DNA of 64,000 bases from NCBI RefSeq assembly GCF_039654945.1, contig NW_027361763.1:28334001-28398000 (forward strand), written 5' to 3'. This DNA is from Dendrobates tinctorius (taxonomy: Eukaryota). Position numbers and translations under genes: made by a program. Below, one piece after another: positions 4,631 to 64,000 of the stretch. How positions within the stretch are numbered: position 1 is the first letter of the stretch; each line of letters starts with the position of its first letter. The notes under the pieces were generated by a model, which saw only the letters and a program-made list of their open reading frames with translations, was not told the DNA's origin and made no database searches.

Positions 4631-5795
4631 CTACTGATCCACTTCTACCTCATCCTGTCCTTCAATCTTGGTGGGGTCTAGGGATGGTGGTTCTTCGGGA
4701 AGGACTCTAAATTTTGGCAGCGTGGAATTCTTCTGTTCCAGACTTTGCTTTCTCCACTTAATCCGGCGGTTCTGGAACCAGACCTTCACCTGTGAAGAAA
4801 GGAGAAGACGTTGTTGAGAACTGGGATCTGGCAAATATGCGAAACTCTTTAGTTACATCACAGTGACCCAAATTATGAGTGTGAATATATATAGGAAAAT
4901 TCCAAAGCAAATGTGTTCAGCTAAAAAAATACATTGTCAAACCAAAAAGGGCTCAAGTTGAACAACAGTTACAAAGAGCATGTACCGGCTCTTACCTGGG
5001 TTTCTGTGAGGCCAAGTGTGGCAGCCAAGTCCACCCGCTCTGTCCCCACCATATACTGCCGCTTTAGGAATTCCTTCTCCATCCTTTCCAGCTGTTCTGG
5101 AGTGAAAACTGTCCTAAATCTCTTCAGCTTGTGGGATCCTGTGTTGCAGGGCAGAGATCCTATTGGGCAGTTGGTGAAGGACGAATAACCTGGAAGAAGC
5201 AGAAGGTGGCGCTGTCAGAGAAAGAAAGAAAAAAAGAAAGAAAGAAAGAAAAAAAGAAAGACGCTCCATGAACTGGTGCGCACACAGCTACAACTTCTAC
5301 TAGTGAGACAAGATAACTATTCTGATGTGAGAAATACAAGTCTCAGCATTTCTTATCCTGAAGAACAAAAATCCACATCTCTCCTGATCTAACCAACTTT
5401 TTGTAGAGATATTATTAGCGCCAAAAACTAATTATATAGAATTAATATAAGATGAGGAGTGTGGACTCACCTCTGTGGCTGCACAGGGGGTACAGACATC
5501 TGCACCCTCCACTGAAGTGCTGCTGGGGCTGGACATAGCCGGGGAAGGCTGCAGGTTGGCAGACCCACACCGGAAAGTAGGACATGGCCCCATAGGTATA
5601 GCCATGGGGTGCAGGGGGCATCTGCCAGACGGGTTCCTGCAAAATAACTCGGGGTGCCCGTCTGTCCTCCCTGGATAATATAGAGTCTATATCAAAGGCG
5701 TTCCTTGGTCTTGTCTGGTCCTGAATGGCCACTGGCAGAGCAGGAGTCTGATCCAAATGGTGGCCAAGCCTTGGGAAGATGAGACTAGGCTGCAT
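4631..5795 (-). CDS. noto: Not/notochord homeobox protein, copy 1; exons 5795-5471, 5189-4996, 4789-4631; 225 aa
   Basis: GT-AG introns in phase (325+194+159 nt). eh1 motif FDIDSIL. Homeodomain KRFRTVFTPEQLERMEKEFLKRQYMVGTERVDLAATLGLTETQ|VKVWFQNRRIKWRKQS recognised as Xnot/flh class; intron between HD44 and HD45. Confidence 0.93.
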
Positions 5796-5892
5796 GATGG
5801 CTGGGAGAAGGGAAAGTATCCTCAGGTGATTAGAAGTACTTGGAGAAGGTGATCTCTGCTGGAGAATGTAGGGTCCTGAGCTCTGAGCCTCC

Positions 5893-5926
5893 TTATATCC
5901 AGAGCTGGGCTCTGTGAATTGCAAAT
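5893..5926 (-). promoter_or_regulatory. Putative noto core promoter: TATAA box with adjacent octamer-like site (TATA also at 14160-14164, 45558-45562, 56920-56924)
   Basis: GGATATAAGG on the minus strand ~100 nt upstream of the ATG in all four copies; (A/T)TGCAAAT ~25 nt further upstream. Confidence 0.6.
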
Positions 5927-7243
5927 ACACTATTAGCATGCCAATAGCCCAGAGCAGAGATCAGCACTGAGAGTGGAGGAGTGGGCTCGGCACACAGACC
6001 CCACACTGCCCCCGAGAGGAGAGGAAATGGCCACGGAGCAAAGCTTCCTACAGCATCCCCCAGCTGGACCCAAAACCCAGGGTAAACAAGACTCCTGTAA
6101 TGAATCCATAATTAGCGGGAATCGTGTGATGAGTGTAACTATATCTATATATCCACGTGTCTATATACCGACCTGTGATCCACCCGTCCACGGGGCGCAG
6201 GATTCTGTTATCTGCTCATCTATGTATACAGCTCATATTTAGCTGGTAGTTATTAATGGATCTCATATTTCACTGATTATCCACTTATCTATGTATCTAA
6301 CGCTACATCTCACATATTTATTATCTATCATGTTTATCTGTCTATTTATCTCATAACTGTTATCTACTTATTTATGTATCGATCTCCTATTTATCTATTG
6401 CTCTACACCGGCAGAAATAGAAATAATGGATGGATAGAAACTAGACAAAGACGGACTTTATAGGATGTGAGAACAATCTACAGAATTGCTTTAAAAGGCT
6501 AATTATTATTATTATTAATTATTATTATTATCGTTATTATTTATTATTATAGATAGATTCTATATAATTATCTCCAGATCTCCGGCCCCCGCTATAAGTA
6601 GCCGCCTAATATCCTCTGAGGGCAGCGCCCCCGTATGTCTCCATATCTGCTGTTCTCGCCGGTCCTGGTAATTACAGAGAATTGCTCTAATGATACATTA
6701 CACTGAGGAGAGATCCCCAGATCTCAGGAGATCTCCAGGACAAAACACCGAGCAAGAGGCACAAAGTCGCTTTCTACATTGATGAGGATCGAAATGTGTA
6801 ATAACCGGACATTAGACAGATCCATAATGATCTCCTCTCTGCTGCCAGGGTGGGCTCTCCTGGGGACATACCGGGGTCCAGCTCCGAGCCACTTATATTA
6901 GGGATTTTTTAGGGACATATTTTCCATTTCTCTTTATATTCATCCATCTCTTACTTTCTAAATAAATTTCATCATTGAAACATTTTTAGTAAATTGTGAA
7001 ATATCTTTTTTATTTTCTCATTTTCAAAGTAACATTTTTCCTCCTTTATTCTCCCAGACAATAGATGATTGTACAATGTGACACTTACATTTTATTTCTG
7101 TTGTATACATTCAGTAGACGACTTGGAAACAATCAAGTTTTTCACTGGTTTTCTTTTTGCTCCAGTTTCGCTATTTTTTTTTCTTATGACAGAGATCTGA
7201 TATTTTTTACATTTTCACTTTGACAATGTCTTTACACGTATAA

Positions 7244-7501
7244 GGCTGTGTGCACACGTAATTGGAAATGCTGCGGATTTTGAAAAATCCACAGGTCAAA
7301 ATACCTGCAATTTAGCCCTGCGGTTTCATACATCACAATGGTGAAGGTGTGAAACCGCAGCGGAATCCGCACCAAGAATTGACATGCTGCGGATTGTAAC
7401 CCACGGAAAAATCTGCAGCATGTGCACAGCGTTTTTGGTTTTACCATTGAAAACAATGGTACTGTACAACACAGCAGAATCTACACCGTGTGCACAAAGC
7501 C
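7244..7501. mobile_element. Harbinger-type MITE, 258 bp (also 46919-47176, 58322-58579); absent upstream of copy 2
   Basis: TIRs GGCTGTGTGCACAC / GTGTGCACAAAGCC; TAA TSD; empty site with a single TAA at 15507-15509. Confidence 0.9.
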
Positions 7502-8639
7502 TAAGTGACTGGGTTTAATAACAGAGGTGACGTTGTTTCATTTTTATTCCACTTTTCCCCTCATTTTCATGTCCTTCCTACTTCTTACACTTTTTTTGCT
7601 TTACTTGGATTATTGATCATTTTTTATAGCAAGTCACTAGTTTTGCTTTTTGTTCCAGTGAAGTTTTTTCTTTTCTTTTTTATGTCCTTTCCATTTAACA
7701 CATATTTCCTCTCTCTTTGTATCGCTGTCTTCAGTATAATTAATCTCCTGATAACACCAACAAAGGTCAAACTACTCAAATAAAAAACAGCATCAATTAC
7801 ATAACAATAAAAATACAAACAATTACAAAACTGCAGTAAAGGGGGTGAGTGTGTACAGCGCCTGAAGTGGTAATTCATGATCTGTATATCTCATTTCATG
7901 TAGCCTAAACATCACGGTATAATATCAATGTGTTCCGTCTTCCATGGAGAGACACAGTAGAAATAGAAGTAATGCGCATACAAAATACAAGTCGTCAGAC
8001 CCCTCAGGAGAATCACAAAACATCTCCAGCTTTTATTACCTTTATTTGGGTAGTTTGATCTTTGTTGGCGTTTTCTGTTATTCCTTAAAACTCCCGCCCA
8101 TTAGCTGCTGCCCCAGAATTGTTTAATTAATTCTTCTCTTGGTTAGACATTGGGCTGCTCCGACCCCTCATCTCCATACAACGTGTAAGTCTGCATGTGT
8201 AGCCCATTCACTATCTCCATCCATCCCTCACTCCATCAGGATGGCCGGGCCATCATTGTAAATACACACCTTGGCGCTATATAAAGATTATTATTATTAT
8301 ACAATGAGGTGTGATTGGATAATTAGAGGAGATCTGATTCATCAGTGTCGTCTTCTTCTCCTGGTCGGTGTCTGCTGCTTTCTCACCTCGGCCGAGACGG
8401 AGGACAATCTCGGTCACTGTAAGAGATGAAGATGGCGGCAGCTCCGGTGGCTCCAGCCCAACAATCCACATTTGGTGTCAGTTTCTCCATTGTTCTGTGG
8501 GAACCCTTGTGCTCCACATATTGTTCTCAGTTTGACATTTTTCTTTCCTCTTATTCCAGTTCTGATCCTTTATAATGTGATTATTCCGATCATGAAATCA
8601 CTTTTTCCTTTATCTAAGCATCAATCCTCCTTATATAAC

Positions 8640-8995
8640 ACCAATCCTCCTCAGATCTCACCGATCCTCCTCAGATCTCACCGATCCTCCTCAGATCTAA
8701 CCAATCCTCCTCAGATCTCACCAATCCTCCTCAGATCTCACCAATCCTCCTCAGATCTCACCAGTCCTCCTCAGATCTCACCAGTCCTCCTCAGATCTCA
8801 CCAGTCCTCCTCAGATCTCACCAATCCTCCTCAGATCTCACCAATCCTCCTCAGATCTCACCAGTCCTCCTCAGATCTCACCAGTCCTCCTCAGATCTCA
8901 CCAGTCCTCCTCAGATCTCACCAGTCCTCCTCAGATCTCACCAGTCCTCCTCAGATCTCACCAGTCCTCCTCAGATCTCACCAGTCCTCCTCAGT
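8640..8995. repeat. 20-bp minisatellite, ~17.5 copies
   Basis: Visible 20-nt period. Confidence 0.95.
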
Positions 8996-10516
8996 TCATC
9001 AATTCTGATATTTTGCAATCATTCTATTCTTGTATTAACCCCATATGAGCCGGTAACCAAGTCTTCGGAATTATATGACACTATACTACAAAACTACTTA
9101 CAAAGGATCAGTGGTAAATGTTGGATATTTTTTTCTAATTTCCAGTAAAGATATGGTTTCACGGGAAAAGTGCCAAAATTGACAGGGTACACCTTACCTG
9201 TGGAATACATACATACCGTAATGTGGAACTACTTTTGTATACAGTGCTGAGTGCCACCATTTTGGTGTCCTTATTTGCACTTTTTATGCATGTTATTTTG
9301 TATTGTCTTATGTGCCAATAAAGAGTTTTTATGCAAGTTTTTTGAAAAACCGCTCCTATGGACCTCCTTTTTCTAAATATGTGATCTCTGGAGAGGTTTG
9401 TTAGTAGCTAAGTGAATTTCACTTTGCGAACAAATCAATTGGAGTCTGGGTTTTTGTTTTTTGTTCTCCTTCCATTCAGCACTTGACCCATCCATTTGAA
9501 CATTTTCACTGCCCCCAGACCCCTTTCCAGGGTTTTAAAGAAAAAAAAAAGCTTGACTTTCACATTGACTCCCAAACGAGCACCTCAGCATTTTAGTCCT
9601 CGCTCATCACTAGTCTCTACTAATTCCAACCAGAGCGCCCCTATAATGATGAGCTTCATCCCCAACATCCCAGTAATATCTACGGTCACTTTTCTGCTAG
9701 AAAGTCAAGTCTAGGAGACTCCTGTGGTGTCTGCTCCTCCCCAGTGTAAAGCTCTTGGCCGGGTGTGGACCTTCCACTTCAGAGCTGCAGGGTAACAAGT
9801 TTCATTCCCCGGGGGCTGATAATGACTGACCTGATAACAAGGGGCCTCTTATGGCCTTGTATGAACAGAAGAACCACCCTAAGGCCCAATGTGCCCTAGA
9901 GGCAAATCTAACATCTACACAGCTTTAGGGCGGTTTCACACATCCAGATAATTCTGGTACTGGGAAAACTGGTACCGGAGTGGTCCGTGTGGATACGTGT
10001 GCTATCCGTATTTCCGTGTGTACCATCCGTGTGTGATCCGTGTCCTGTCCGTATGTCCGTGTAGTGAAATAATTGGTTTCAATATTAACCCTTTGACTCC
10101 TAAAAACGCACACGGATGGCACACGGACGCCATCCGTGTGCGGTACGTGTTTACACGGACCCATTGACTTGTATTGGTCCATGTGATCTGTGCTGTTGCA
10201 CAAAAACGGACATGTCAGCGTATTGTGCACACGGACACAGTCCGTGAAAACACGCTGACATCTGCATAGACATATTCATTAGAATGTGTGTCTATGTGTG
10301 TCAGTGTCTCCGGTACGTGAGAAAACTGTCACTACATGTACCGGAGCCACTGACATGTGAAACCGGCCGTACTGAGCCCTTCACTCCCCAAATGTATGGA
10401 GACCTCTATTGTGTGCTGATTGCTACAACTAGGATGAACCTTTTTAATGCCTTTTTTTTGGGAGGGGAGGTGGTAAGGTGGGGTGTAAAAGTATATTGGC
10501 AAGATTTATATCTTTA

Positions 10517-11476
10517 CTAGATTATGGCCCGATGCTATGGCATCGGGAGGATGCGATAGCATCAAACCTCTTGCCATGTTAACCCTCAACACACACACTC
10601 CTCAACACACACTCCTCTCATCTTTCACCATCTCCACTCACTCTTTCACTCCACATACGACCCCTTCTCTCACTCCGTCTCTCATACTCACGCCGTCATC
10701 GCCGCAGCTCCACGATCCCCGACATCTTCTTCCGCCGGCGCCATCCTGGATCCAGACGTTGTCCACGCCGGCGACATGTTCTTGCGGCGACGCCATCTTG
10801 AGTATCGTGAAATCCCGCGATAGTCAAGATGGCGTCGCCGGAAGAACATGTCGCCGGCGTGGACGACGTCGGGATCCAAAATGGCGTCGGCGAAATCTCG
10901 CGAGTTTTCGCCGACGCCATTTTGGATCCCGATGTCGTCCTCGCCAGCGACATGTTCTTGCGGCGACGCCATCTTGACTATCGTGGGATTTCGCCGATCC
11001 AAAATGGCGTCGCCGCAAGAACATGTCGCCGGCGTGGACGACATCGGGATCCAAAATGGCGTCGGCGTAATCTTGCGAGATTTCGCGGACGCCATCTTTT
11101 TGGATCCCGAGTCGTCCACGCCAGCGACATGTTCTTGCGGCGACGCCATCTTGAATATCGCGGGATTTCACGAAATCCAAGATGGCGTCGCCGCAAGAAC
11201 ATGTCGGCGGCCTGGAGAACGTCTGGATCCAGGATCGCGGCGGAGGAAGATGTCGGGGCAGCGACGATGACGGTGTGAGTATGAGAAACGGAGTGAGAGA
11301 AAGGAACGTATGTGGAGTGAAAGAGTGAGTGGAGGTGAAAGGTGAGAGGAGTGTGTGTTGAGGTGGTGTGGTGTGTTGAGGGTTAACATGTGCGTGTGTG
11401 TGTGGTGACGTCACCGGTTACAACTGGACGGAAGTTGTTACAACCGGAAGCTGCTTAGGGCATTTATTATTAGAGA
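10517..11476 (-). mobile_element. Helitron copy
   Basis: Same termini and insertion site as 2320-3294. Confidence 0.88.
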
Positions 11477-12807
11477 TAAAAGCTGCTCAATAACTACATT
11501 ATAAAAAAGTTTAACCCCTTCATCTCTGGCCATTTTCCGTTTTTCACTCTCCTTCCCAGAGCCACCATATTTTTCAGATTTTTCTGCCAACATGGCCGTG
11601 TGAAGGCTTATTTTTTTTTTGTAGGAGTAGTTGCATTTTTGAGAAGCATCAATGATTTTACCATATAGTGTAACTAAAAAAAAAAAAAAAAAAACAGAAA
11701 AACAATCCAGCTGCTGTGAAATTGGAAAAAAAAAAAAGTGCAATTTCCTCAATTTTTTTTTACCCAGTTCACTAAATGTTAATACTGACCCCCCATTATG
11801 ATTCTCCAGGTCATTACAAGTTCACAGGTGCCAAAGATTTATAGGTTCTTTTTTTTTTAAATTATTTAAGTGGTGAAAAAAATCCAAAATTTGTCAGCTT
11901 ATGCTGCGGTGACCAAACAAAAAAAAAAACAAGAAAAACAAAAAAAAAAAAGTAACTGAAGTTGTTAATATTTTTTGCACTATGCCGTTTACTGATCAGT
12001 ATAATTCTTTTTATATTTTGATAACATCGGCCGTTCCTTATACCAATTTTTATTTTTTTATTATTGTTCTATTTTGAATGGGCAAAACTTAAATAGGTTT
12101 AAAAACTTTTTTTTCTACTTTGAATTTAGCTGTCATGTGCTGGAGAAGATGTCAGCTCAGCGCCGGAGCCCGCATTAAAGTGGAAGACACGGCTTAAAAC
12201 GTTTTTAGGAGTGATAAGCATTACAGTGAGACACTTGAGAACTAGTGAAGAGCGAACATCCTGGGGTAACGTGTTATCGAGCATGCTCAGGTTGTTATCT
12301 GAGTATCTTGGGCGTGCTTGAATAATATGTTCGAGTCCCCGGGGCACCGTTTGTCGTGACTTTTAGACAGCAGCCACACATGCGGGATTTCCTGTTTGTG
12401 TGTTGCGACTGTCTAACACCCGCGAGACTTGCAGCGATGGGGACTCCAAACATATTATTCGAGCACGCCCAAGATACTCTGGTAGCACCTCAGCATGCTC
12501 AATAACACGTTATCCGAGGACATTCGCTCATCAATAATGAGAACGAATTCTAAGAGAAGAGATTGACCACAAAAAGATAAATTGGTAATATAAGTATAAA
12601 AAGGTTTTATTTAAAAGTGTAGAATAAATACCAGTATAAAACATCTGATTTAAATAAAATAAACAAAATATAAAAATTGCACTGGTCCTTCACGAGCCAC
12701 CATAGGGGCTGACATGTATCATAGAACATTGCGCTGGGAACCCTGTCTGAGTCATATGCCTGTCTGACTCTTCTCTAATAGTCCAGAGAAGATAAAGTGG
12801 TGGAGTT

Positions 12808-14062
12808 CTACTGATCCACTTCTACCTCATCCTGTCCTTCAATCTTGGTGGAGTGTAGGGCTGGTGGTTCTTCGGGAAGGACTCTAAATTTTGACAGCGT
12901 GGCATTCTTCTGTTCCAGACTTTGCTTTCTCCACTTAATCCTGCGGTTCTGGAACCAGACCTTCACCTGTGAAGAAAGGAGAAGACGTTGTTGAGAACTG
13001 GGATCTGGCAAATATGCGAAACTCTTTAGTTACATCACAGTGACCCAAATTATGAGTGTGACTATATATATAGGAAAATTCCAAAGCAAATGTGTTCAGC
13101 TAAAAAAATACATTGTCAAACCAAAAAGGGCTCAAGTTGAACAACAGTTACAAAGAGCATGTACCGGCTCTTACCTGGGTTTCTGTGAGGCCAAGTGTGG
13201 CAGCCAAGTCCACCCGCTCTGTCCCCACCTTATACTGCCGCTTTAGGAATTCCTTCTCCAGCCTTTCCAGCTGTTCTGGAGTGAAAACTGTCCTAAATCT
13301 CTTCAGCTTGTGGGATCCTGTGTTGCAGGGCAGAGATCCTATTGGGCAGTTGGTGAAGGACGAACAACCTGGAAGAAGCANNNNNNNNNNNNNNNNNNNN
13401 NNNNNNNNNNNNNNNNNNNNNNNNNNNNNNNNNNNNNNNNNNNNNNNNNNNNNNNNNNNNNNNNNNNNNNNNNNNNNNNNNNNNNNNNNNNNNNNNNNNN
13501 NNNNNNNNNNNNNNNNNNNNNNNNNNNNNNNNNNNNNNNNNNNNGTGCGCACACAGCTACAACTTCTACTAGTAAGACAAGATAACTATTCTGATGTGAG
13601 AAATACAAGTCTCAGCATTTCTTATCCTGAAGAACAAAAATCCACATCTCTCCTGATCTAACCAACTTTTTGTAGAGATATTATTAGCGCCAAAAACTAA
13701 TTATATAGAATTAATATAAGATGGAGTGTGGACTCACCTCTGTGGCTGCACAGGTGGTCCGGACATCTGCACCCTCCACTGAAGTGCTGCTGGGGCTGGA
13801 CATAGCCGGGGAAGGCTGCAGGTTGGCAGACCCACACCGGAGAGTAGGACATGGCCCCATAGGTATAGCCATGGGGTGCAGGGGGCATCTGCCAGATGGG
13901 TTCCTGCAAAATAACTCGGGGAGCCCGTCTGTCCTCCCTGGATAATATAGAGTCTATATCAAAGGCGTTCCTTGGTCTTGTCTGGTCCTGAATGGCCACT
14001 GGCAGAGCAGGAGTCTGATCCAAATGGTGGCCAAGCCTTGGGAAGATGGGAGAAGGCTGCAT
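12808..14062 (-). CDS. noto: Not homeobox protein, copy 2; exons 14062-13738, 13368-13175, 12966-12808; HD M26K
   Basis: Same exon sizes and splice sites as copy 1, frame open. Intron 1 contains a 163-N gap. Confidence 0.9.
13381..13543. other. 163-N gap in intron 1 of copy 2, at the position of a (GAAA)n tract in the other copies
   Basis: N run; flanks are colinear with copy 1, where the interval is ~74 nt. Confidence 0.95.
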
Positions 14063-16624
14063 GCTGGCTGGGAGAAGGGAAAGTATCCTCTGGTGATTAG
14101 AAGTACCAGGAGAAGGTGATCTCTGCTGGAGAATGTAGGGTCCTGAGCTCTGAGCCTCCTTATATCCAGATCTGGGCTCTGTGAATTGCAAATACACTAT
14201 TAGCATGCCAATAGCCCAGATCAGAGATCAGCACTGAGAGTGGAGGAGCGGGCTCGGCACACAGACCCCACACTGCCCCCGAGAGGAGAGGAAATGGCCA
14301 TGGGGCAAAGCTTCCTACAACCTCCCCCAGCTGGCCCCAAAATCCAGAGGACACAGGACTCCTGTAATGAATCCATAATTAGCGGGAATCGTGTGATGAG
14401 TGTAACTATATATCCACGTGTCTATATACCGACCTGTGATCCACCCGTCCACGGGGCGCAGGATTCTGTTTTCTGCTCATCTATGTATACAGCTCATATT
14501 TAGCTGGTAGTTATTAATGGATCTCATATTTCAATGATTATCGACTTATCTATGTATCTAACGCTACATCTCACATATTTATTATCGATCATGTTTATCT
14601 GTCTATTTATCTCATAACTTATCTACTTATTTATGTATCGATCTCCTATTTATCTATTGTTCTACACCGGCAGAAATAGAAATAATGGATGGATAGAAAC
14701 TAGATAAAGACGGACTTTATAGGATGTGAGAACAATCTATAGAATGGCTTTAAAAGGCTAATTATTATTATTATTTTTATTATTACCGCCTTTCCCAATC
14801 ATTTCCAGATGACATCAGATAAATTGTATATGATTATCTCCAGATCTCCGGCCCCCGCTATCAGTAGCCGCCTAATATCCTCTGAGGGCAGCGCCCCCGT
14901 ATGTCTCCATATCAGCTGTTCTCGCCGGTCCTGGTAATTACAGAGAATTGCTCTAATGATACATTACACTGAGGAGAGATCCCCAGATCTCAGGAGATCT
15001 CCAGGACCAAAACACCGAGCAAGAGGCACAAAGTCGCTTTCTACCTTGATGAGGCGCGAAATGTGTAATAACCGGACATTAGACAGATCCATAATGATCT
15101 CCTCTCTGCTGCCAGGGTGGGCTCTCCTGGGGACATACCGGGGTCCAGCTCCGAGCCCCTTATATTATGGATTTTTTAGGGACATATTTTCCATTTCTCT
15201 TTATATTCATCTTTTACTTTCTAAATAGATTTCATCATTGAAACATTTTTAGTAAATTGTGAAATATCTTTTTTATTTTGTCATTTTCAAAGTAAAATTT
15301 TTCCTCCTTTCTTCTTCCAGACAATAGATGATTGTACAATGTGACACTTACATTTTATTTCTGTTGTATACATTCAGTAGACGACTTTTAAACAACCAAA
15401 GTTATTCACTGGTTTTATTATTTTTGCTGCAGTTTTACTATTTTTTTTCTTATGACAGAGATCTGATATTTTTTACATTTTTACTTTGACAATGTCTTTA
15501 CACGTATAAGTGACTGGGTTTAATAACAGGTGACTTTGTTTTATTTTTATTCCACTTTTTCCCCTCATTTTCATGTCCTTTCAACTTCTTACACTTATTT
15601 TTGCTTTATTTGTATTATTGATAATTTTTTATAGCAATTCACTAGTTTTGCTTTTTTTTCCAGTGAAGTTTTTTCTTTTCTTTTTTATGTCCTTTCCATT
15701 TAACACATATTTCCTCTCTCTTTGTATCGCTGTCTTCAGTATAATTAATCTCCTGATAACACCAACAAAGGTCAAACTACTCAAATAAAAAACAGCATCA
15801 ATTACATAACAATAAAAATACAAACAATTACAAAACTGCAGTAAAGGGGGTGAGTGTGTACAGCGCCTGAAGTGGTAATTCATGATCTGTATATCTCATT
15901 TCATGTAGCCTAAACATCACGGTATAATATCAATGTGTTCCGTCTTCCATGGAGAGACACAGTAGAAATAGAAGTAATGCGCATACAAAATACAAGTCGT
16001 CAGACCCCTCAGGAGAATCACAAAACATCTCCAGCTTTTATTACCTTTATTTGGGTAGTTTGATCTTAGTTGGCGTTTTCTGTTATTCCTTGAAACTCCC
16101 GCCCATTAGCTGCTGCCCCAGAATTGTTTAATTCTTCTCTTGGTTAGACATTGGGCTGCTCCGACCCCTCATCTCCATACAACGTGTAAGTCTGCATGTG
16201 TAGCCCATTCACTATCTCCATCCATCCCTCACTCCCTCAAGATGGCCGGGCCATCATTGTAAATACACACCTTGGCGCTAAATAAAGATTATTATTATTA
16301 TACAATGAGGTGTGATTGGATAATTAGAGGAGATCTGATTAATCAGTGTCGTCTTCTTCTCCTGGTCGGTGTCTGCTGCTTTCTCACCTCGGCCGATACT
16401 GAGGACAATCTCGGTCACTGTAAGAGATGAAGATGGCGGCAGCTCCGGTGGCTCCAGCCCGACAATCCACATTTGGTGTCCGTTCCTCCATTGTTCTGTG
16501 GGAACCCTTGTGCTCCACATATTGTTCTCAGTTTCTGACATTTTTCTTTCCTCTTATTCCAGTTTTGATCTTTCATAATCTGATTATTCCGATCATGAAA
16601 TCAATTTTTCTTTTCTCTAAGCAT

Positions 16625-16715
16625 CAATCCTCCTATCTCACTGATCCTCCTTATTGCTCACTGATCCTCCTCAGATCTCACCAATCCTCCTCAGATCTCA
16701 CCAGTCCTCCTCAGA
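16625..16715. repeat. 20-bp minisatellite, short degenerate version (~4 copies)
   Basis: Same motif with mismatched units. Confidence 0.8.
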
Positions 16716-22530: not shown

Positions 22531-22639
22531 ACCGCAGTTCCGGAATTAGGCCTAACCGTCATTCCTGAAAAAATGAAAAACTTACGTGTGCAAACCACAG
22601 GTGCTGTAGCTTGCTTAACAGCTCGCCAGCCGTTCTCAC

Positions 22640-27717: not shown

Positions 27718-27791
27718 TTTTGGTAGAAATGTAGACAAAATCCAACAAACTATATAGTATGTAAAACAAGGTACAAGGTGTCTATAGGACA

Positions 27792-39941: not shown

Positions 39942-39945
39942 TACA

Positions 39946-41165: not shown

Positions 41166-41227
<62 letters not shown>

Positions 41228-51728: not shown

Positions 51729-54700
51729 TAGTGTTGAGCATTCCGATACCGCAAGTATCGGGTATCGGCCGATACTTGCTGTATCGGAATTCCGATACCG
51801 ACTTCCGATATTTTTTCAATATCGGAATTCGGCATCGGAATCGGAAGTTCAGTTGATTGACGGCCTGACGTCATCATGATGCGCGGTGTGTGCGCATCAT
51901 GATGCGCCGTCATTTCGGGCCTGCCGGGGGTCTCTGCCGGCCTGCCGGGGGGCTGTGCCGGCCTGCCGGGGGGCTGTGTGGACTGCCCGGGGTGTGTACC
52001 GGCCTGCCGGGGGGCTGTGCCGGCCTGCCGGTGGTCTGTGCACCCTGTGGGGGTCTGTACCGGCCTGCCGGGGGGCTGTGCCGGCCTGCCGGGGGGCTGT
52101 GCCGGCCTGCCGGGGGGCTGTGCTGATGTCCGGGGGTCTGTGCAAGCATCGTCCGATGGGACTACAAGTCCCATCGGGCGATGCCTGCTACCATGACAGT
52201 GATTGACACATTAGCCAATGATGGGACAGTAGTAGTCCCATCATCCGGCTAATGTGTTAAATGTTAAAAAAAAAAAAAAAATACTAAATACATACTACAT
52301 GCATGCTACATACATACTACATGCTACATACATACTACATATATACTACATACATACTACATACATGCTACATACATACTACATGCATGCTACATACATA
52401 CTACATATATACTACATACATGCTACATACATACTGCATGCTACATACATACTACATACATACTACATACATACTACATGCATGCTACATACATACTACA
52501 TATATACTACATGCATGCTACATACATACTACATACTACATACATACTACATACATACTACATACATACTACATGCTACATACATACCACATACATACTA
52601 CATACATACTACATACTACATATATACTACATGCATGCTACATACATACTACATGCTACATACATACCACATATATACTACATACATACAATACATACTA
52701 CATACATACTACATACATACTACATGCATGCTACATACATACTACATGCTACATACATACCACATACATACTACATACATACTACATGCTACATACATAC
52801 TACATATATACTACATGCATGCTACATACATACTACATGCTACATACATACCACATACATACTACATACATACTACATGCTACATACATACTACATATAT
52901 ACTACATGCATGCTACATACATACTACATGCTACATACATACCACATACATACTACATACATACTACATACATACTACATGCTACATACATACTACATAT
53001 ATACTACATGCATGCTACATACATACTACATTTCCCACACAGCAATGGCATAAAGTGAGACTAGGGACTTTTTCTTTTTTAAGTGGCGGAGGAATACAGT
53101 GCGGAAGGATACCTACCTTCCGTCATTGGATTCCTGCAGCCCGTAGAGAACGGCAGCAACAGCTGATGCTGCAGTTCTCTACCCAAGATCGTCGTGGGAC
53201 ACACTCGTGGACTGCTTCGGATCGTGGGTGAGTATTTTTGTGGTTTGTTATGTTAATATTTATTCCGTAGACGACAATGGCTTCGGGGAACAATGTGACA
53301 ACTATTGGTAAGTATGTTACTCTATGTTATATGTACTGTATGTCTATGTATGTATTGTATGAATGTATTGTATGTATGTAGTATATATGTGGTATGTATG
53401 TAGCATGTAGTATGTATGTAGTATGTATGTAGCATGCATGTAGCATGCAGTATGTATGTAGCATGCATGTAGTATATATGTAGTATGTATGTAGCATGTA
53501 GTATGTATGTAGTATGTATGTAGTATGTATGTGGTATGTATGTAGCATGCATGTAGTATATATGTAGTATGTATGTAGCATGTAGTATGTATGTAGTATG
53601 TATGTGGTATGTATGTAGCATGTAGTATGTATGTAGCATGCATGTAGTATATATGTAGTATGTATGTAGCATGTAGTATGTATGTAGTATGTATGTAGTA
53701 TGTATTGTATGTATGTAGTATATATGTGGTATGTATGTAGCATGTAGTATGTATGTAGCATGCATGTAGTATATATGTAGTATGTATGTAGTATGTATGT
53801 GGTATGTATGTAGCATGTATGTATGTAGCATGCATGTAGCATGTATGTAGTATGTAGTATGCATGTAGTATATATGTAGTATGTATGTAGCATGCATGTA
53901 GTATGTATGTAGTATGTATGTAGTATGTATGTAGCATGCAGTATGTATGTAGCATGTATGTAGTATATATGTAGTATGTATGTAGCATGCATGTAGTATG
54001 TATGTAGCATGCATGTAGTATGTATGTAGCATGTATGTAGTATGTATGTAGTATATATGTAGTATGTATGTAGCATGTAGTATGTATGTAGCATGCATGT
54101 AGTATGTATGTAGCATGCATGTAGTATATATGTAGTATGTATGTAGCATGCATGTAGTATATATGTAGTATGTATGTGGTATGTATGTAGCATGTAGTAT
54201 GTATGTAGTATGTATGTAGCATGTAGTATGTATGTAGTATGTATGTAGCATGCATGTAGTATGTATGTAGCATGTATGTAGTATGTATGTAGTATATATG
54301 TAGTATGTATGTAGCATGTAGTATGTATGTAGCATGCATGTAGTATGTATGTAGCATGCATGTAGTATATATGTAGTATGTATGTAGCATGCATGTAGTA
54401 TATATGTAGTATGTATGTGGTATGTATGTAGCATGTAGTATGTATGTAGCATGTAGTATGTAGCATGCATGTAGTATATATGTAGTATGTATGTAGCATG
54501 TAGTATGTATGTAGCATGCATGTAGTATATATGTATGTAGCATGTAGTATGTATGTAGCATGCATGTAGTATGTATGTAGCATGTAATTTTTTTTTTTTT
54601 TTTACATTTAACACATTAGCCGGATGATGGGACTACTACTGTCCCATCATTGGCTAATGTGTCAATCACTGTCATGGTAGCAGGCATCGCCCGATGGGAC

Positions 54701-55075
54701 TTGTAGTCCCATCGGACGATGCCTGCACAGCCCACCGGCAGGCCGGCACAGCCCACCGGCAGGCCGGCACAGCCCCCCGGCAGGCCGGCACAGCCCCCCG
54801 GCAGGCCGGCACAGACCACCGGCAGGCCGGCACAGACCACCGGAGCCTGCACAGACCCCCTGGCAGGCCGGCACAGCCCCCCGAAAGGCCCGTACAGACC
54901 CCAGAGAGGCTGTACAAGGGCAGGAAAGGGTTTTTCTTATTCCGATACCGGAAGTCCCATAGACTTGAATGGGACTTCCGGTATCGGAATCGGCGATACC
55001 GATACTTTTTTTAAAGATCGGCCGATACCATCCGATACGATACTTTGAAGTATCGGACGGTATCGCTCAACTCTA
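51729..55075. mobile_element. Non-autonomous hAT element, 3347 bp, near-palindromic with inverted satellite arms; only in the copy 3-4 spacer
   Basis: TIRs TAGTGTTGAGC / GCTCAACTCTA; perfect 8-bp TSD GTGATAAG; empty site in the other units. Confidence 0.93.
52280..54586. repeat. Compound (CATACATACTA/CATGCTA)n satellite at 52280-53030 and its reverse complement at 53340-54586
   Basis: Read directly from the sequence. Confidence 0.95.
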
Positions 55076-55670
55076 GTGATAAGCATTACAGTGAGACACT
55101 TGAGAACTAGTGAAGAGCGAACATCCTGGGGTAACGTGTTATCGAGCATGCTCAGGTTGTTATCTGAGTATCTTGGGCGTGCTTGAATAATATGTTCGAG
55201 TCCCCGGGGCACCGTTTGTCGCGGCTTTTAGACAGCAGTCACACATGCGGGATTTCCTGTTTGTGTGTTGCGACTGTCTAACAGCCGCGAGACTTGCAGC
55301 GGTGGGGACTCCAAACATATTATTCGAACACACCCAAGATACTCGGGTAGCACCTCAGCATGCTCAATAACACGTTATCCGAGGACATTCGCTCATCAAT
55401 AATGAGAACGAATTCTAAGAGAAGAGATTGACCACAAAAAGATAATTTGGTAAAAAGTATAAAAATGTTTTATTTAAAAGTGTAGAATAAATACCAGTAT
55501 AAAACATCTGATTTAAATAAAATAAACAAAATATAAAAATTGCACTGGTCCTTCACGAGCCACCATAGGGGCTGAGATGTATCATAGAACATTGGGTTGG
55601 GAACCCTGTCTGAGTCATATGCCTGTCTGACTCTTCTCTAATAGTCCAGAGAAGATAAAGTGGTGGAGTT

Positions 55671-56822
55671 CTACTGATCCACTTCTACCTCATCCTGTCC
55701 TTCAATCTTGGTGGGGTCTAGGGATGGTGGTTCTTCGGGAAGGACTCTAAATTTTGGCAGCGTGGAATTCTTCTGTTCCAGACTTTGCTTTCTCCACTTA
55801 ATCCGGCGGTTCTGGAACCAGACCTTCACCTGTGAAGAAAGGAGAAGACGTTGTTGATAACTGGGATCTGGCAAATATGTGAAACTCTTTAGTTACATCA
55901 CAGTGACCCAAATTATGAGTGTGACTATATATAGGAAAATTCCAAAGCAAATGTGTTCAGCTAAAAAAAAATACATTGTCAAACCAAAAAGGGCTCAAGT
56001 TGAACAACAGTTACAAAGAGCATGTACCGGCTCTTACCTGGGTTTCTGTGAGGCCAAGTGTGGCAGCCAAGTCCACCCGCTCTGTCCCCACCATATACTG
56101 CTGCTTTACGAATTCCTTCTCCAGCCTTTCCAGCTGTTCTGGAGTGAAAACTGTCCTAAATCTCTTCAGCTTGTGGGATCCTGTGTTGCAGGGCAGAGAT
56201 CCTATTGGGCAGTTGGTGAAGGACGAATAACCTGGAAGAAGCAGAAGGTGGCGCTGTCAGAGAAAGAAAGAAAGAAAGAAAGACGCTCCTTGGACTGGAG
56301 AGCACAGACCTACAACTTCTCATAGTGAGATTCAAGATAACTATTCTGATGTGAGAAATACAAGTCTCAGCAATTCTTATCCTGAAGAACAAAAATCCAC
56401 ATCTCTCCTGATATAACCAACTGTTTGTAGAGATATTATTAGCACCAAAAACTAATTATTAGATAGAATTAATATAGCATAAGGAGTGTGGACTCACCTC
56501 TGTGGCTGCACAGGGGGTCTGGACATCTGCACCCTCGGCTGAAGTGCTGCTGGGGTTGGACATAGCCAGGGAAGGCTGCAGGTTGGCAGAGCCACACTGG
56601 AGAGTAGGACATGGCCCCATAGGTATAGCCATGGGGTGCAGGGGGCATCTGCCAGACGGGTTCCTGCACAATGACTCGGGGAGCCCGTCTGTCCTCCCTG
56701 GACAATATCGAGTCTATATCAAAGGCGTTCCTTGGTCTTGTCTGGTCCCGCATGGCCGCTGGCAGAGCAGGAGTCTGATCCAAATGGTGGCCAAGCCTTG
56801 GGAAGATGGGAGTAGGCTGCAT
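55671..56822 (-). CDS. noto: Not homeobox protein, copy 4; exons 56822-56498, 56231-56038, 55829-55671
   Basis: Intact splice sites and frame; nearly identical to copy 3. Confidence 0.93.
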
Positions 56823-57160
56823 GATGGCTGCGAGAAGGGAAAGTATCCTCAGGTGATTAGAAGTTCCAGGAGCAGGTGATCTCTGCTGGAGAATGTAGGG
56901 TCCTGAGCTCTGAGCCTCCTTATATCCAGATCTGGGCTCTGTGAAATGCAAATACACAATTAGCATGCCAATAGCCCAGAGCAGAGATCAGCACTGAGTC
57001 GAGGAGTGGGCTCGGCACACAGACCCCACACTGCCCCCGAGAGGAGAGGAAATGGCCATGGGGCAAAGCTTCCTACAACCTCCCAGAGCTGGACCCAAAA
57101 TCCAGAGGACACAGGACACCTGTAATGAATCCATAATTAGCGGGAATCGTGTGATGAGTG

Positions 57161-57201
<41 letters not shown>

Positions 57202-57556
57202 ATATATCCATGTATCTATATACCGACCTGTGATCCACCCGTCCACGGGGTGCAGGATTCTGTTATCTGCTCATCTATGTATACAGCTCATATTTAGCTG
57301 GTAGTTATTAATGGATCTCATATTTCACTGATTATCGACTTATCTATGTATCTAACGCTACATCTCACATATTTATTATCTATCATGTTTATCTGTCTAT
57401 TTATCTCATAACTGTTATCTACTTATTTATGTATCGATCTCCTATTTATTTATTGTTCTACACCGGCAGAAATAGAAATAATGGATGGATAGAAACTAGA
57501 TAAAGACGGACTTTATAGGATGTGAGAACAATCCACAGAATTGCTTTAAAAGGCTA

Positions 57557-57609
<53 letters not shown>

Positions 57610-59717
57610 CGTTATTATTTATTATTATTGATAAATTGTATATGATTATCTCCAGATCTCCGGCCCCCGCTATCAGTAGCCGCCTAATATCCTCTGAGGG
57701 CAGCGCCCCCGTGTGTCTCCATATCTGCTGTTCTCGCCGGTCCTGGTAATTACAGAGAATTGCTCTAATGATACATTACACTGAGGAGAGATCCCCAGAT
57801 CTCAGGAGATCTCCAGGACCAAAACACCGAGCAAGAGGCACAAAGTCGCTTTCTACATTGATGAGGATCGAAATGTGTAATAACCGGACATTAGACAGAT
57901 CCATAATGATCTCCTCTCTGCTGCCAGGGTGGGCTCTCCTGGGGTCATACCGGGGTCCAGCTCTGATCTCCTTATATTATGGATTTTTTAGGGACATATT
58001 TTCCATTTCTCTTTATATTCATCCATCTCTTACTTTCTAAATAAATTTCATCATTGAAACATTTTTAGTAAATTGTGAAATATCTTTTTTATTTTCTCAT
58101 TTTCAAAGTAAAATTTTTCCTCCTTTATTCTCCCAGACAATAGATGATTGTACAATGTGACACTTACATTTTATTTCTGTTGTATACATTCAGTAGACGA
58201 CTTGGAAACAATCAAGCTTTTCACTGGTTTTCTTTTTGCTCCAGTTTTGCTATTTTTTTTCTTATGACAGAGATCTGATATTTTTTACATTTTCACTTTG
58301 ACAATGTCTTTACACGTATAAGGCTATGTGCACACGTAATTGGAAATGCTGCGGATTTTGAAAAATCCACAGGTCAAAATACCTGCGGTTTAGCCCTGCG
58401 GTTTCATACATCACAATGGTGAAGGTGTGAAACCGCAGCGGAATCCGCACCAAGAATTGACATGCTGCGGATTGTAACCCACGGAAAAATCTGCAGCATG
58501 TGCACAGCGTTTTTGGTTTTACCATTGAAAACAATGGTACTGTACAACACAGCAGAATCTACACCGTGTGCACAAAGCCTAAGTGACTGGGTTTAATAAC
58601 AGAGGTGACGTTGTTTCATTTTTATTCCACTTTTCCCCTCATTTTCATGTCCTTCCTACTTTTTACACTTTTTTTGCTTTACTTGGATTATTGATAATTT
58701 TTTATAGCAAGTCACTAGTTTTGCTTTTTGTTCCAGTGAAGTTTTTTCTTTTCTTTTTTATGTCCTTTCCATTTAACACATATTTCCTCTCTCTTTGTAT
58801 CGCTGTCTTCAGTATAATTAATCTCCTGATAACACCAACAAAGGTCAAACTACTCAAATAAAAAACAGCATCAATTACATAACAATAAAAATACAAACAA
58901 TTACAAAACTGCAGTAAAGGGGGTGAGTGTGTACAGCGCCTGAAGTGGTAATTCATGATCTGTATATCTCATTCCATGTAGCCTAAACATCACGGTATAA
59001 TATCAATGTGTTCCGTCTTCCATGGAGAGACACAGTAGAAATAGAAGTAATGCGCATACAAAATACAAGTCGTCAGACCCCTCAGGAGAATCACAAAACA
59101 TCTCCAGCTTTTATTACCTTTATTTGGGTAGTTTGATCTTTGTTGGCGTTTTCTGTTATTCCTTAAAACTCCCGCCCATTAGCTGCTGCCCCAGAATTGT
59201 TTAATTAATTCTTCTCTTGGTTAGACATTGGGCTGCTCCGACCCCTCATCTCCATACAACGTGTAAGTCTGCATGTGTAGCCCATTCACTATCTCCATCC
59301 ATCCCTCACTCCATCAGGATGGCCGGGCCATCATTGTAAATACACACCTTGGCGCTATATAAAGATTATTATTATTATACAATGAGGTGTGATTGGATAA
59401 TTAGAGGAGATCTGATTCATCAGTGTCGTCTTCTTCTCCTGGTCGGTGTCTGCTGCTTTCTCACCTCGGCCGAGACGGAGGACAATCTCGGTCACTGTAA
59501 GAGATGAAGATGGCGGCAGCTCCGGTGGCTCCAGCCCAACAATCCACATTTGGTGTCAGTTTCTCCATTGTTCTGTGGGAACCCTTGTGCTCCACATATT
59601 GTTCTCAGTTTGACATTTTTCTTTCCTCTTATTCCAGTTCTGATCCTTTATAATGTGATTATTCCGATCATGAAATCACTTTTTCCTTTATCTAAGCATC
59701 AATCCTCCTTATATAAC

Positions 59718-60072
59718 ACCAATCCTCCTCAGATCTCACCGATCCTCCTCAGATCTCACCGATCCTCCTCAGATCTAACCAATCCTCCTCAGATCTCACC
59801 AATCCTCCTCAGATCTCACCAATCCTCCTCAGATCTCACCAGTCCTCCTCAGATCTCACCAGTCCTCCTCAGATCTCACCAGTCCTCCTCAGATCTCACC
59901 AATCCTCCTCAGATCTCACCAATCCTCCTCAGATCTCACCAGTCCTCCTCAGATCTCACCAGTCCTCCTCAGATCTCACCAGTCCTCCTCAGATCTCACC
60001 AGTCCTCCTCAGATCTCACCAGTCCTCCTCAGATCTCACCAGTCCTCCTCAGATCTCACCAGTCCTCCTCAG
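59718..60072. repeat. 20-bp minisatellite, ~17.5 copies, same variant pattern as 8640-8995
   Basis: Visible 20-nt period; the overlapping 178-aa ORFs are identical. Confidence 0.95.
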
Positions 60073-61594
60073 TTCATCAATTCTGATATTTTGCAATCAT
60101 TCTATTCTTGTATTAACCCCATATGAGCCGGTAACCAAGTCTTCGGAATTATATGACACTATACTACAAAACTACTTACAAAGGATCAGTGGTAAATGTT
60201 GGATATTTTTTTCTAATTTCCAGTAAAGATATGGTTTCACGGGAAAAGTGCCAAAATTGACAGGGTACACCTTACCTGTGGAATACATACATACCGTAAT
60301 GTGGAACTACTTTTGTATACAGTGCTGAGTGCCACCATTTTGGTGTCCTTATTTGCACTTTTTATGCATGTTATTTTGTATTGTCTTATGTGCCAATAAA
60401 GAGTTTTTATGCAAGTTTTTTGAAAAACCGCTCCTATGGACCTCCTTTTTCTAAATATGTGATCTCTGGAGAGGTTTGTTAGTAGCTAAGTGAATTTCAC
60501 TTTGCGAACAAATCAATTGGAGTCTGGGTTTTTGTTTTTTGTTCTCCTTCCATTCAGCACTTGACCCATCCATTTGAACATTTTCACTGCCCCCAGACCC
60601 CTTTCCAGGGTTTTAAAGAAAAAAAAAAGCTTGACTTTCACATTGACTCCCAAACGAGCACCTCACCATTTTAGTCCTCGCTCATCACTAGTCTCTACTA
60701 ATTCCAACCAGAGCGCCCCTATAATGATGAGCTTCATCCCCAACATCCCAGTAATATCTACGGTCACTTTTCTGCTAGAAAGTCAAGTCTAGGAGACTCC
60801 TGTGGTGTCTGCTCCTCCCCAGTGTAAAGCTCTTGGCCGGGTGTGGACCTTCCACTTCAGAGCTGCAGGGTAACAAGTTTCATTCCCCGGGGGCTGATAA
60901 TGACTGACCTGATAACAAGGGGCCTCTTATGGCCTTGTATGAACAGAAGAACCACCCTAAGGCCCAATGTGCCCTAGAGGCAAATCTAACATCTACACAG
61001 CTTTAGGGCGGTTTCACACATCCAGATAATTCTGGTACTGGGAAAACTGGTACCGGAGTGGTCCGTGTGGATACGTGTGCTATCCGTATTTCCGTGTGTA
61101 CCATCCGTGTGTGATCCGTGTCCTGTCCGTATGTCCGTGTAGTGAAATAATTGGTTTCAATATTAACCCTTTGACTCCTAAAAACGCACACGGATGGCAC
61201 ACGGACGCCATCCGTGTGCGGTACGTGTTTACACGGACCCATTGACTTGTATTGGTCCATGTGATCTGTGCTGTTGCACAAAAACGGACATGTCAGCGTA
61301 TTGTGCACACGGACACAGTCCGTGAAAACACGCTGACATCTGCATAGACATATTCATTAGAATGTGTGTCTATGTGTGTCAGTGTCTCCGGTACGTGAGA
61401 AAACTGTCACTACATGTACCGGAGCCACTGACATGTGAAACCGGCCGTACTGAGCCCTTCACTCCCCAAATGTATGGAGACCTCTATTGTGTGCTGATTG
61501 CTACAACTAGGATGAACCTTTTTAATGCCTTTTTTTTGGGAGGGGAGGTGGTAAGGTGGGGTGTAAAAGTATATTGGCAAGATTTATATCTTTA

Positions 61595-62554
61595 CTAGAT
61601 TATGGCCCGATGCTATGGCATCGGGAGGATGCGATAGCATCACACCTCTTGCCATGTTAACCCTCAACACACACACTCCTCAACACACACTCCTCTCATC
61701 TTTCACCATCTCCACTCACTCTTTCACTCCACATACGACCCCTTCTCTCACTCCGTCTCTCATACTCACGCCGTCATCGCCGCAGCTCCACGATCCCCGA
61801 CATCTTCTTCCGCCGGCGCCATCCTGGATCCAGACGTTGTCCACGCCGGCGACATGTTCTTGCGGCGACGCCATCTTGAGTATCGTGAAATCCCGCGATA
61901 GTCAAGATGGCGTCGCCGGAAGAACATGTCGCCGGCGTGGACGACGTCGGGATCCAAAATGGCGTCGGCGAAATCTCGCGAGTTTTCGCCGACGCCATTT
62001 TGGATCCCGATGTCGTCCTCGCCAGCGACATGTTCTTGCGGCGACGCCATCTTGACTATCGTGGGATTTCGCCGATCCAAAATGGCGTCGCCGCAAGAAC
62101 ATGTCGCCGGCGTGGACGACATCGGGATCCAAAATGGCGTCGGCGTAATCTTGCGAGATTTCGCGGACGCCATCTTTTTGGATCCCGAGTCGTCCACGCC
62201 AGCGACATGTTCTTGCGGCGACGCCATCTTGAATATCGCGGGATTTCACGAAATCCAAGATGGCGTCGCCGCAAGAACATGTCGGCGGCCTGGAGAACGT
62301 CTGGATCCAGGATCGCGGCGGAGGAAGATGTCGGGGCAGCGACGATGACGGTGTGAGTATGAGAAACGGAGTGAGAGAAAGGAACGTATGTGGAGTGAAA
62401 GAGTGAGTGGAGGTGAAAGGTGAGAGGAGTGTGTGTTGAGGTGGTGTGGTGTGTTGAGGGTTAACATGTGCGTGTGTGTGTGGTGACGTCACCGGTTACA
62501 ACTGGACGGAAGTTGTTACAACCGGAAGCTGCTTAGGGCATTTATTATTAGAGA
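61595..62554 (-). mobile_element. Helitron copy
   Basis: Same termini and insertion site. Confidence 0.88.
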
Positions 62555-63887
62555 TAAAAGCTGCTCAATAACTACATTATAAAAAAGTTTAACCCCTTCA
62601 TCTCTGGCCATTTTCCGTTTTTCACTCTCCTTCCCAGAGCCACCATATTTTTCAGATTTTTCTGCCAACATGGCCGTGTGAAGGCTTATTTTTTTTTTGT
62701 AGGAGTAGTTGCATTTTTGAGAAGCATCAATGATTTTACCATATAGTGTAACTAAAAAAAAAAAAAAAAAAAAACAGAAAAACAATCCAGCTGCTGTGAA
62801 ATTGGAAAAAAAAAAAAGTGCAATTTCCTCAATTTTTTTTTACCCAGTTCACTAAATGTTAATACTGACCCCCCATTATGATTCTCCAGGTCATTACAAG
62901 TTCACAGGTGCCAAAGATTTATAGGTTCTTTTTTTTAAAAATTATTTAAGTGGTGAAAAAAATCCAAAATTTGTCAGCTTATGCTGCGGTGACCAAACAA
63001 AAAAAAAAACAAGAAAAACAAAAAAAAAAAAGTAACTGAAGTTGTTAATATTTTTTGCACTATGCCGTTTACTGATCAGTATAATTCTTTTTATATTTTG
63101 ATAAAATCGGCCGTTCCTTATACCAATTTTTATTTTTTTATTATTGTTCTATTTTGAATGGGCAAAACTTAAATAGGTTTAAAAACTTTTTTTTCTACTT
63201 TGAATTTAGCTGTCATGTGCTGGAGAAGACGTCAGCTCAGCGCCGGAGCTCGCATTAAAGTGGAAGACACGGCTTAAAACGTTTTTAGGAGTGATAAGCA
63301 TTACAGTGAGACACTTGAGAACTAGTGAAGAGCGAACATCCTGGGATAACGTGTTATCGAGCATGCTCAGGTTGTTATCTGAGTATCTTGGGCGTGCTTG
63401 AATAATATGTTCGAGTCCCCGGGGCACCGTTTGTCGTGACTTTTAGACAGCAGCCACACATGCGGGATTTCCTGTTTGTGTGTTGCGACTGTCTAACAGC
63501 CGCGAGACTTGCAGCGATGGGGACTCCAAACATATTATTCGAGCACACCCAAGATACTCGGGTAGCACCTCAGCATGCTCAATAACACGTTATCCGAGGA
63601 CATTCGCTCATCAATAATGAGAACGAATTCTAAGAGAAGAGATTGACCACAAAAAGATAAATTGGTAATATAAGTATAAAAAGGTTTTATTTAAAAGTGT
63701 AGAATAAATACCAGTATAAAACATCTGATTTAAATAAAATAAACAAAATATAAAAATTGCACTGGTCCTTCACGAGCCACCATAGGGGCTGACATGTATC
63801 ATAGAACATTGGGTTGGGAACCCTGTCTGAGTCATATGCCTGTCTGACTCTTCTCTAATAGTCCAGAGAAGATAAAGTGGTGGAGTT

Positions 63888-64000
63888 CTACTGATCCACT
63901 TCTACCTCATCCTGTCCTTCAATCTTGGTGGGGTCTAGGGATGGTGGTTCTTCGGGAAGGGCTCTGAGTTTTGACAGCGTGGCATTCTTCTGTTCCAGAC
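63888..64000 (-). CDS. noto: Not homeobox copy 5, 3' part of exon 3 (truncated by window)
   Basis: Translates ...LEQKNATLSKLRALPEEPPSLDPTKIEGQDEVEVDQ*; the 3' UTR matches the other copies. Confidence 0.88.
   Translation of the reverse strand, partial: LEQKNATLSKLRALPEEPPSLDPTKIEGQDEVEVDQ

Follow-up and report, generated by a model that had tools for sequence, protein, structure and literature searches.

We analyzed a window of 64,000 nt (64 kb) from the genome of Dendrobates tinctorius, the dyeing poison frog (contig NW_027361763.1, positions 28,334,001 to 28,398,000 of the forward strand), whose gene content comprises only transposons and tandem copies of a homeobox gene of the Not/noto family. 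A scan of all six frames for the WFQNRR motif recovered the third helix of four homeodomains, each of them on the minus strand, and mapping of exons by reading of the sequence combined with BLAST yielded four complete minus-strand genes (A to D). In each, three exons (325, 194, and 159 nt) are separated by introns with canonical GT-AG sites and make up an open reading frame (ORF) of 225 amino acids (aa). The visible reading frame of a fifth gene (E), at the right edge, is open through its stop codon and encodes a C terminus (SKLRAL) unlike that of genes A to D; this C terminus had no match among the D. tinctorius proteins retrieved, and no gene is annotated there. A single 29-Mb record of GCA_039654945.1 encodes all of the matching D. 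tinctorius RefSeq proteins. The protein of gene A equals XP_073442909 (P0258) apart from an annotated 48-aa N-terminal extension, those of genes B and C are exactly P0257 (XP_073442910 or XP_073442915) and P0260 (XP_073442911), and that of gene D is 100% identical to a D. tinctorius protein named "homeobox protein not2-like" (P0179; XP_073442913). Coordinates are collected in Table 1.

The copies share their signals as well as their exon structure. A TATA box about 100 nt upstream of the ATG and an AATAAA poly(A) signal about 197 nt past the stop codon are invariant in all four genes, as is an eh1 motif of the Groucho-binding type (FDIDSIL, residues 34 to 40); the upstream stretch of 275 nt is 97% identical among the four copies and the 3' untranslated region (UTR) is 98% identical. 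Thus, the four intact three-exon ORFs with TATA box, eh1 motif, and poly(A) signal described in a previous sequence-only reading of this window are all present. An in-frame ATG further upstream (position 5939 in gene A) would add 48 codons (5796 to 5939) that are open in all four copies, and RefSeq annotates this extension for gene A, P0175, and the Phyllobates genes. We rejected it as the start of gene A: the TATA box lies within it, which makes the 225-aa form more likely, and its changes are mostly nonsynonymous (7 versus 3 synonymous, counted by hand on the upstream alignment). The extension is probably not translated.

Self-BLAST of the window and Tandem Repeats Finder recovered kilobase-scale direct repeats (94 to 100% identity; E = 0) that resolve into five head-to-tail units of ~8.09 kb, in agreement with the earlier claim of at least five head-to-tail copies of about 8 kb. 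Units 1 and 2 are 97.6% identical between positions 530 to 5201 and 8719 to 13380. Unit 3 breaks within a 20-mer minisatellite before the 26-kb block that interrupts it, and unit 4 is split by an insert of 3.5 kb. The stop-to-stop spacings of successive genes are 8177, 31505, 11358, and 8217 nt, so that clean ~8-kb steps account for just two of the window's four intervals. The term "macrosatellite" used in the sequence-only reading overstates the regularity of the units, the other two intervals being broken by the 26-kb and 3.5-kb inserts. The array is indeed open at both edges, as had been proposed: another 225-aa Not gene is annotated ~2.3 kb to the left of window position 1, and gene E continues beyond the right end. 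Elsewhere in the array another pair of window-type genes lies 8137 nt apart, and genes of the window subtype number nine annotated in total, plus gene E. It forms a single young sub-cluster within a family of ~15 genes that is older and more dispersed.

We then consider the family to which these genes belong. Exons 2 and 3 together match the Pfam Homeodomain model and split it at homeodomain position 44/45. In an exhaustive HMMER search seeded with exon 2, the best single-domain matches were Not-family proteins; two top-ranking multi-homeodomain matches (P0001 and P0004) were considered as possible Not arrays and rejected, being unrelated families with fused repeats. Searches of 5.8 billion proteins, with the nearest full-length match and with the window's own protein as queries, returned only Not, noto, or not2 as top matches, and the nearest ESM Atlas cluster is named "homeobox protein notochord." The homeodomain is identical at 54 to 56 of 60 residues to Xenopus laevis NOTO and NOT2 and to Xenopus tropicalis noto, and both NOTO and NOT2 carry the eh1 motif in the form FNIDSIL, beginning at residue 34 as in the window proteins. 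The full-length score against X. tropicalis noto, whose cluster also contains the characterized X. laevis NOTO (Q06615; Xnot) and NOT2 (Q91770), is 247 bits, compared with 47 to 67 bits for the best lone homeodomains from other families in the Protein Data Bank (PDB) and 85 bits for one chain with a tandem engrailed fusion. In a tree of 70 proteins built without a defined non-Not outgroup family, the window proteins fall within anuran Not; the distant matches bear inconsistent automatic names (MOX-2-like, EMX2, Hox-A5-like, and Pax-3-B-like) and were not used as outgroups. These comparisons, including that with Xnot, bear out the assignment to the Not class made previously, and it is well supported that the window proteins represent true Not/noto orthologues (ANTP class, NK-like). 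The same family includes Xenopus Xnot (NOTO_XENLA) and Xnot2 (NOT2_XENLA), zebrafish floating head, and chick Cnot1 and Cnot2. The proteins encoded here have 225 aa, compared with 233 to 236 aa in Xenopus. X. tropicalis has one gene, X. laevis has two homeologues, and the chick has two Not genes, in contrast to the five units in 64 kb and the approximately 15 genes on one scaffold found here.

To place this number among frogs, we counted Not proteins per species by cluster look-ups. D. tinctorius has 13 distinct Not proteins under 16 RefSeq accessions on one record, amounting to about 15 annotated genes. In Ranitomeya imitator there are about 12 distinct RefSeq proteins (14 accessions), with more in an older GenBank annotation; five Not proteins are annotated in Ranitomeya variabilis and four in Phyllobates terribilis. 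Anomaloglossus, the single species sampled from Aromobatidae, has one Not gene that is annotated twice. The remaining anurans sampled have one Not gene per genome, except for Spea with two and Engystomops with possibly two, which accords with the view of Not as a gene normally present once or twice. The maximum-likelihood tree of the 70 Not proteins broadly tracks anuran phylogeny and unites the dendrobatoid proteins in one clade (support, 100/100) with a long stem (0.32) within Hyloidea. Inside Dendrobatidae the four Phyllobates genes cluster together, and at least two orthology groups are common to Dendrobates and Ranitomeya (e.g., D. tinctorius P0182, P0263, P0184, and P0262 with R. variabilis P0273 and R. 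imitator P0180; 100/99). Seven window-type proteins form a clade confined to D. tinctorius (100/100), with one group of Ranitomeya as its sister (90/93); older paralogues are 72 to 78% identical. On this tree, the window genes are the youngest, D. tinctorius-specific burst of an older noto expansion within Dendrobatidae. Conserved synteny in the Not family refers to the neighborhood of EMX1; here, no called gene was found within 10 kb of three older paralogues and of the young-type P0261, and the tight ~8-kb spacing seems to be particular to the young burst. The genes themselves are already in RefSeq under automatic names such as "not2-like"; a literature search turned up no paper that describes an expanded noto family in these frogs, and the D. 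tinctorius genome paper (PMC11152451) makes no mention of homeobox genes or tandem arrays. The expansion is thus without a paper in the literature searched.

Divergence among the copies is uneven along the gene. Comparison of the A/B with the C/D type gives a divergence of ~6% in exon 1 and likewise in intron 1, whereas exons 2 and 3 and intron 2 are only about 0 to 2.5% diverged, the two exons by no more than about 1.5%. Sliding identity along the segmental re-duplication at the right end of the window shows that its core (~58.4 to 63.3 kb) is 99.6 to 100% identical to ~7.4 to 12.2 kb over ~4.8 kb. This mosaic identity, together with the block of ~100% identity, fits unequal exchange, gene conversion, and a very recent re-duplication of a piece that extends over two units. 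The 34 coding changes among genes A to D comprise 24 nonsynonymous and 10 synonymous ones, which matches the neutral expectation (77% nonsynonymous sites; P = 0.41). Pairwise dN/dS is 0.45 to 0.58 between the two types and 2.4 for A versus B, and the ratio of 10:1 in the homeodomain exons is not significantly above neutral expectation. The homeodomain differs among copies at positions 16, 21, 23, and 26, its helix 3 is invariant, and on a longer timescale the homeodomain shows clear conservation in all dendrobatid paralogues. The copies thus change in a near-neutral manner, without sign of selection keeping each one.

Sequencing runs gave a further view of the locus. For the D. tinctorius assembly, HiFi reads were assembled with hifiasm (PMC11152451). 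The runs that contain the window sequence are of DNA type only: four runs of one sample (probably that used for the assembly), another D. tinctorius sample with a share of 0.43, and runs from two further species; an other-species run (X6) contains the unit at a likeness of at least 90%. The second D. tinctorius individual (X5) carries an exon 1 of the C/D type (a 177-nt exact piece at 56572 to 56748) and an exon 2 of the A/B type (by the letters at 56093 and 56102), so that at least two gene types exist outside the assembly. One X5 contig has a GT..AG joint from 56849 to 57653 that was examined as a candidate splice and rejected; it would lie on the wrong (plus) strand and upstream of the gene, and we read it as a structural variant between copies.

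We interpret the locus as a genuine tandem amplification, specific to its lineage, of the noto gene (Xnot, floating head) in D. tinctorius, a reading to which we assign a probability of about three in four. The starting point would have been one ~8.1-kb unit with a compact three-exon gene of 1.15 kb, its own TATA promoter and poly(A) signal, and fragments of high-copy transposons. Such a unit most likely multiplied head to tail via unequal crossing-over, with gene conversion or more unequal exchange making the units mosaic; two units would then have been split by transposons, and a 6.8-kb piece across two units would have been copied again very recently. Taken singly, the copies evolve nearly neutrally, by birth and death with redundancy. 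Each encodes an Xnot-type protein with eh1 motif and homeodomain that, by orthology, would act as a Groucho-dependent repressor in the organizer and notochord, and the near-identity of their promoters suggests that the copies are probably regulated together, which would raise noto dosage.

Several points weigh against this reading. Copy A changes the conserved core residue L16 of the homeodomain to M, and copy B has K at position 26; with only 34 substitutions among young copies, intact ORFs are weak evidence of function. Three RNA-labelled D. tinctorius runs lacked the sampled words, in a search that was not aimed at RNA and in which no run was identified as embryo. Contigs from DNA-type runs, aligned to 55000 to 59600, showed no intron-skipping joints at the two introns. 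The contig depths are assembler word depths, which are not convertible to copy number; the block of ~100% identity beside an N run leaves room for local assembly duplication; and the counts in other species depend on automatic annotations.

The N run in question (assembly gap or mask) sits in the first intron of gene B, with the exon 2 acceptor 12 nt downstream, and so cannot shift the reading frame; exactly 12 nt of intron, AG included, are left between it and exon 2. By self-BLAST its flanks are collinear with copy A (5201 just before and 5276 just after), where the equivalent stretch is a CTTT-rich tract. The RefSeq model that spans the run yields P0257, and an identical protein is encoded at a second locus of the array in a gene of 1263 nt (1255 nt for gene B), so that exon 1, beyond the run, agrees in gene type with exons 2 and 3 and the length of the run is plausible. 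These findings are consistent with, though not proof of, continuous flanks.

Selection might also have kept many identical promoters in order to sustain a large, fast burst of noto at gastrulation, an adaptive account of the array that we consider unlikely; the sequence-only reading had likewise suggested a dosage-amplified, copy-number-variable array that possibly supports high early zygotic output. The adaptive account draws on the near-identical promoters and UTRs with their invariant TATA and AATAAA signals, on the shortness of the genes (1.15 kb), on the persistence of the expansion in several dendrobatid genera, and on the precedent of Xenopus, in which the earliest-activated genes are clustered with their close relatives (Nodal ligands, Siamois, histones, and miR-427; PMC6593175). 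However, the youth of the copies and gene conversion account for the identity of the flanks just as well, the neutral ratio of coding changes lends the idea no support, and no RNA-labelled run contained the sampled words. Further, noto in Xenopus is a gastrula organizer gene rather than one active before the mid-blastula transition (MBT). A broader conjecture, which we likewise hold to be doubtful, is that the growth of noto across dendrobatids, from a single gene to a family of 4 to about 15, is adaptive and tied to an altered dendrobatid gastrulation, the young array being a copy-number-variable dosage module for an organizer repressor; del Pino and colleagues reportedly described a delay of dendrobatid notochord elongation relative to blastopore closure.

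Quite unlikely, in our judgment, is selection for different protein properties or expression domains in the copies (sub- or neofunctionalization). In keeping with such diversification, 10 of the 11 differences in the homeodomain exons change an amino acid, including those at the four variable homeodomain positions, dN/dS for A versus B exceeds 1 at 2.4, and older paralogues of 72 to 78% identity are common to Dendrobates and Ranitomeya. However, the 10:1 and 24:10 ratios are both indistinguishable from the 77% expected under neutrality, neither helix 3 nor the eh1 motif varies, and intron 1 is as diverged as exon 1, which marks the divergent segment as one of mosaic ancestry rather than of protein-level selection.

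An assembly artefact, in which falsely duplicated haplotypes or mis-joined contigs would conceal a lower true copy number, is very improbable: the N run within the array, the ~4.8 kb of near-identity, and word depths that give no copy-number calibration leave it some room, but most units differ by 1 to 6%, far above HiFi error, with mosaic patterns and different transposon insertions, there are more than two sequence types (so that two haplotypes cannot explain the units), the second individual carries at least two of them, and multiple Not genes occur independently in three other dendrobatid assemblies. At most, artefact accounts for the block of near-identity next to the N run; it does not account for the whole array.

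The amplification of noto joins a set of tandemly expanded developmental homeobox genes that is already known; what is notable is that the gene amplified here is a conserved organizer regulator that is normally single copy. The early-zygotic clusters of Xenopus (nodal5/6, nodal3, siamois, mix/bix, and miR-427) are likewise tandem clusters in which a developmental regulator occurs as closely related, short genes (PMC6593175). Transcription of those clusters at or before the MBT has been shown; noto, unlike those families, is not known as a clustered gene. Among mammalian homeobox arrays, which evolve fast, D4Z4/DUX4, Rhox, Obox, and the rabbit LEUTX array (PMC8208926) likewise have a homeobox ORF per unit and share young copies, relaxed constraint, and gene conversion. 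D4Z4 differs in being a regular 3.3-kb array of tens of units around an intronless retrogene with proven copy-number polymorphism, whereas the noto array is short and transposon-broken and its genes keep their introns and own promoters. The mammalian cases involve PRD-class newcomers, in contrast to the conserved ANTP-class organizer gene amplified here. The array illustrates how a conserved ANTP-class gene can come under the birth-and-death dynamics usual for young PRD-class homeobox genes. Noto is a key organizer and notochord regulator, and almost all of the vertebrates sampled have it as a single copy. Its 4- to 15-fold expansion, which is restricted to poison frogs and includes a tandem array still active in D. 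tinctorius, is a natural experiment on organizer-repressor dosage and redundancy, in a clade that is said to have unusual notochord timing.

The 981-aa uninterrupted ORF in the 26-kb block, in which no Pfam domain besides the BED zinc finger was detected, is probably a hAT-type transposase. In the Tc1/mariner element of the same block, TA-rich inverted repeats of 78 nt that are 94% complementary flank the ORF. Three stretches of the repeat unit, at 55000 to 55460, 58234 to 58695, and 59158 to 59465, are pieces of very high-copy transposons; in four runs, among them one from another species, their contig word depths range from 1,000 to 300,000. The 20-mer minisatellite varies from 11.8 to 17.8 copies by unit. 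Every unit also contains a GC-rich palindromic element made of 175-bp repeats (about 2.8 copies), which matches its own reverse complement in other units at 86 to 88%.

Table 1. Features of the 64-kb window (positions counted from its first letter)
Feature	Position(s)	Strand	Remarks
Repeat unit 1	1-8088		Uninterrupted
Repeat unit 2	8089-16088		Uninterrupted
Repeat unit 3	16089-16716 + 43069-47763		26-kb non-repeat block 16717-43068 between
Repeat unit 4	47764-51505 + 55075-59166		3.5-kb insert 51506-55074 between
Repeat unit 5	59167-64000		Reaches window end
Units 1 and 2 with first 628 nt of unit 3	1-16716	-	Unbroken 8.09-kb repeats
Remainder of unit 3, split unit 4, unit 5	43069-64000	-	
Segmental re-duplication	57195-64000	-	Copy of 6140-12920, 98.9% identical overall
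Gene A	4631-5795	-	Exons 5471-5795, 4996-5189, 4631-4789
Gene B	12808-14062	-	Exons 13738-14062, 13175-13368, 12808-12966
Gene C	44313-45460	-	Exons 45136-45460, 44680-44873, 44313-44471
Gene D	55671-56822	-	Exons 56498-56822, 56038-56231, 55671-55829
Gene E	63888-64000	-	Last 113 nt of exon 3 visible; cut by window end
TATA box GATATAAGG	A 5891-5899; B 14158-14166; C 45556-45564; D 56918-56926	-	
Poly(A) signal AATAAA	A 4429-4434; B 12606-12611; C 44111-44116; D 55469-55474	-	
eh1 motif of gene A	5676-5696	-	Residues 34-40
N run	13381-13544		Intron 1 of gene B
26-kb non-repeat block	16717-43068		Transposon-rich; interrupts unit 3, replacing about 2.7 kb
222-aa ORF, PIF/Harbinger-type transposase	20285-20953	-	DDE_Tnp_4
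Eukaryotic small-subunit (SSU) rRNA fragment	22132-22559	+	Rfam RF01960, 88 bits, model positions 1118-1666
Tandem repeat	22640-23763		124 bp x 8
981-aa uninterrupted ORF	24553-27498	-	BED zinc finger (zf-BED), Pfam E = 1.4e-11
Tandem repeat	27774-28319		130 bp x 4.2
Tandem repeat	36685-36864		45 bp x 4, exact
Tc1/mariner element	39860-41273		Seemingly intact; contains the 346-aa transposase ORF
Tc1/mariner 346-aa ORF	39978-41018	-	HTH_Tnp_Tc3_2 + DDE_3
3.5-kb insert	51506-55074		Mostly two inverted 11-mer microsatellite blocks; splits unit 4
11-mer microsatellite ATACTACATAC	52281-53031; 53337-54586		Mutually inverted
21-mer GC-rich repeats	51918-52123; 54721-54897		Inverted; beside the 11-mer blocks
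20-mer minisatellite CACCAGTCCTCCTCAGATCT	533-805; 8639-8994; 48316-48551; 59717-60072		
GC-rich palindromic element	2378-3206; 10575-11390; 50125-50953; 61653-62468

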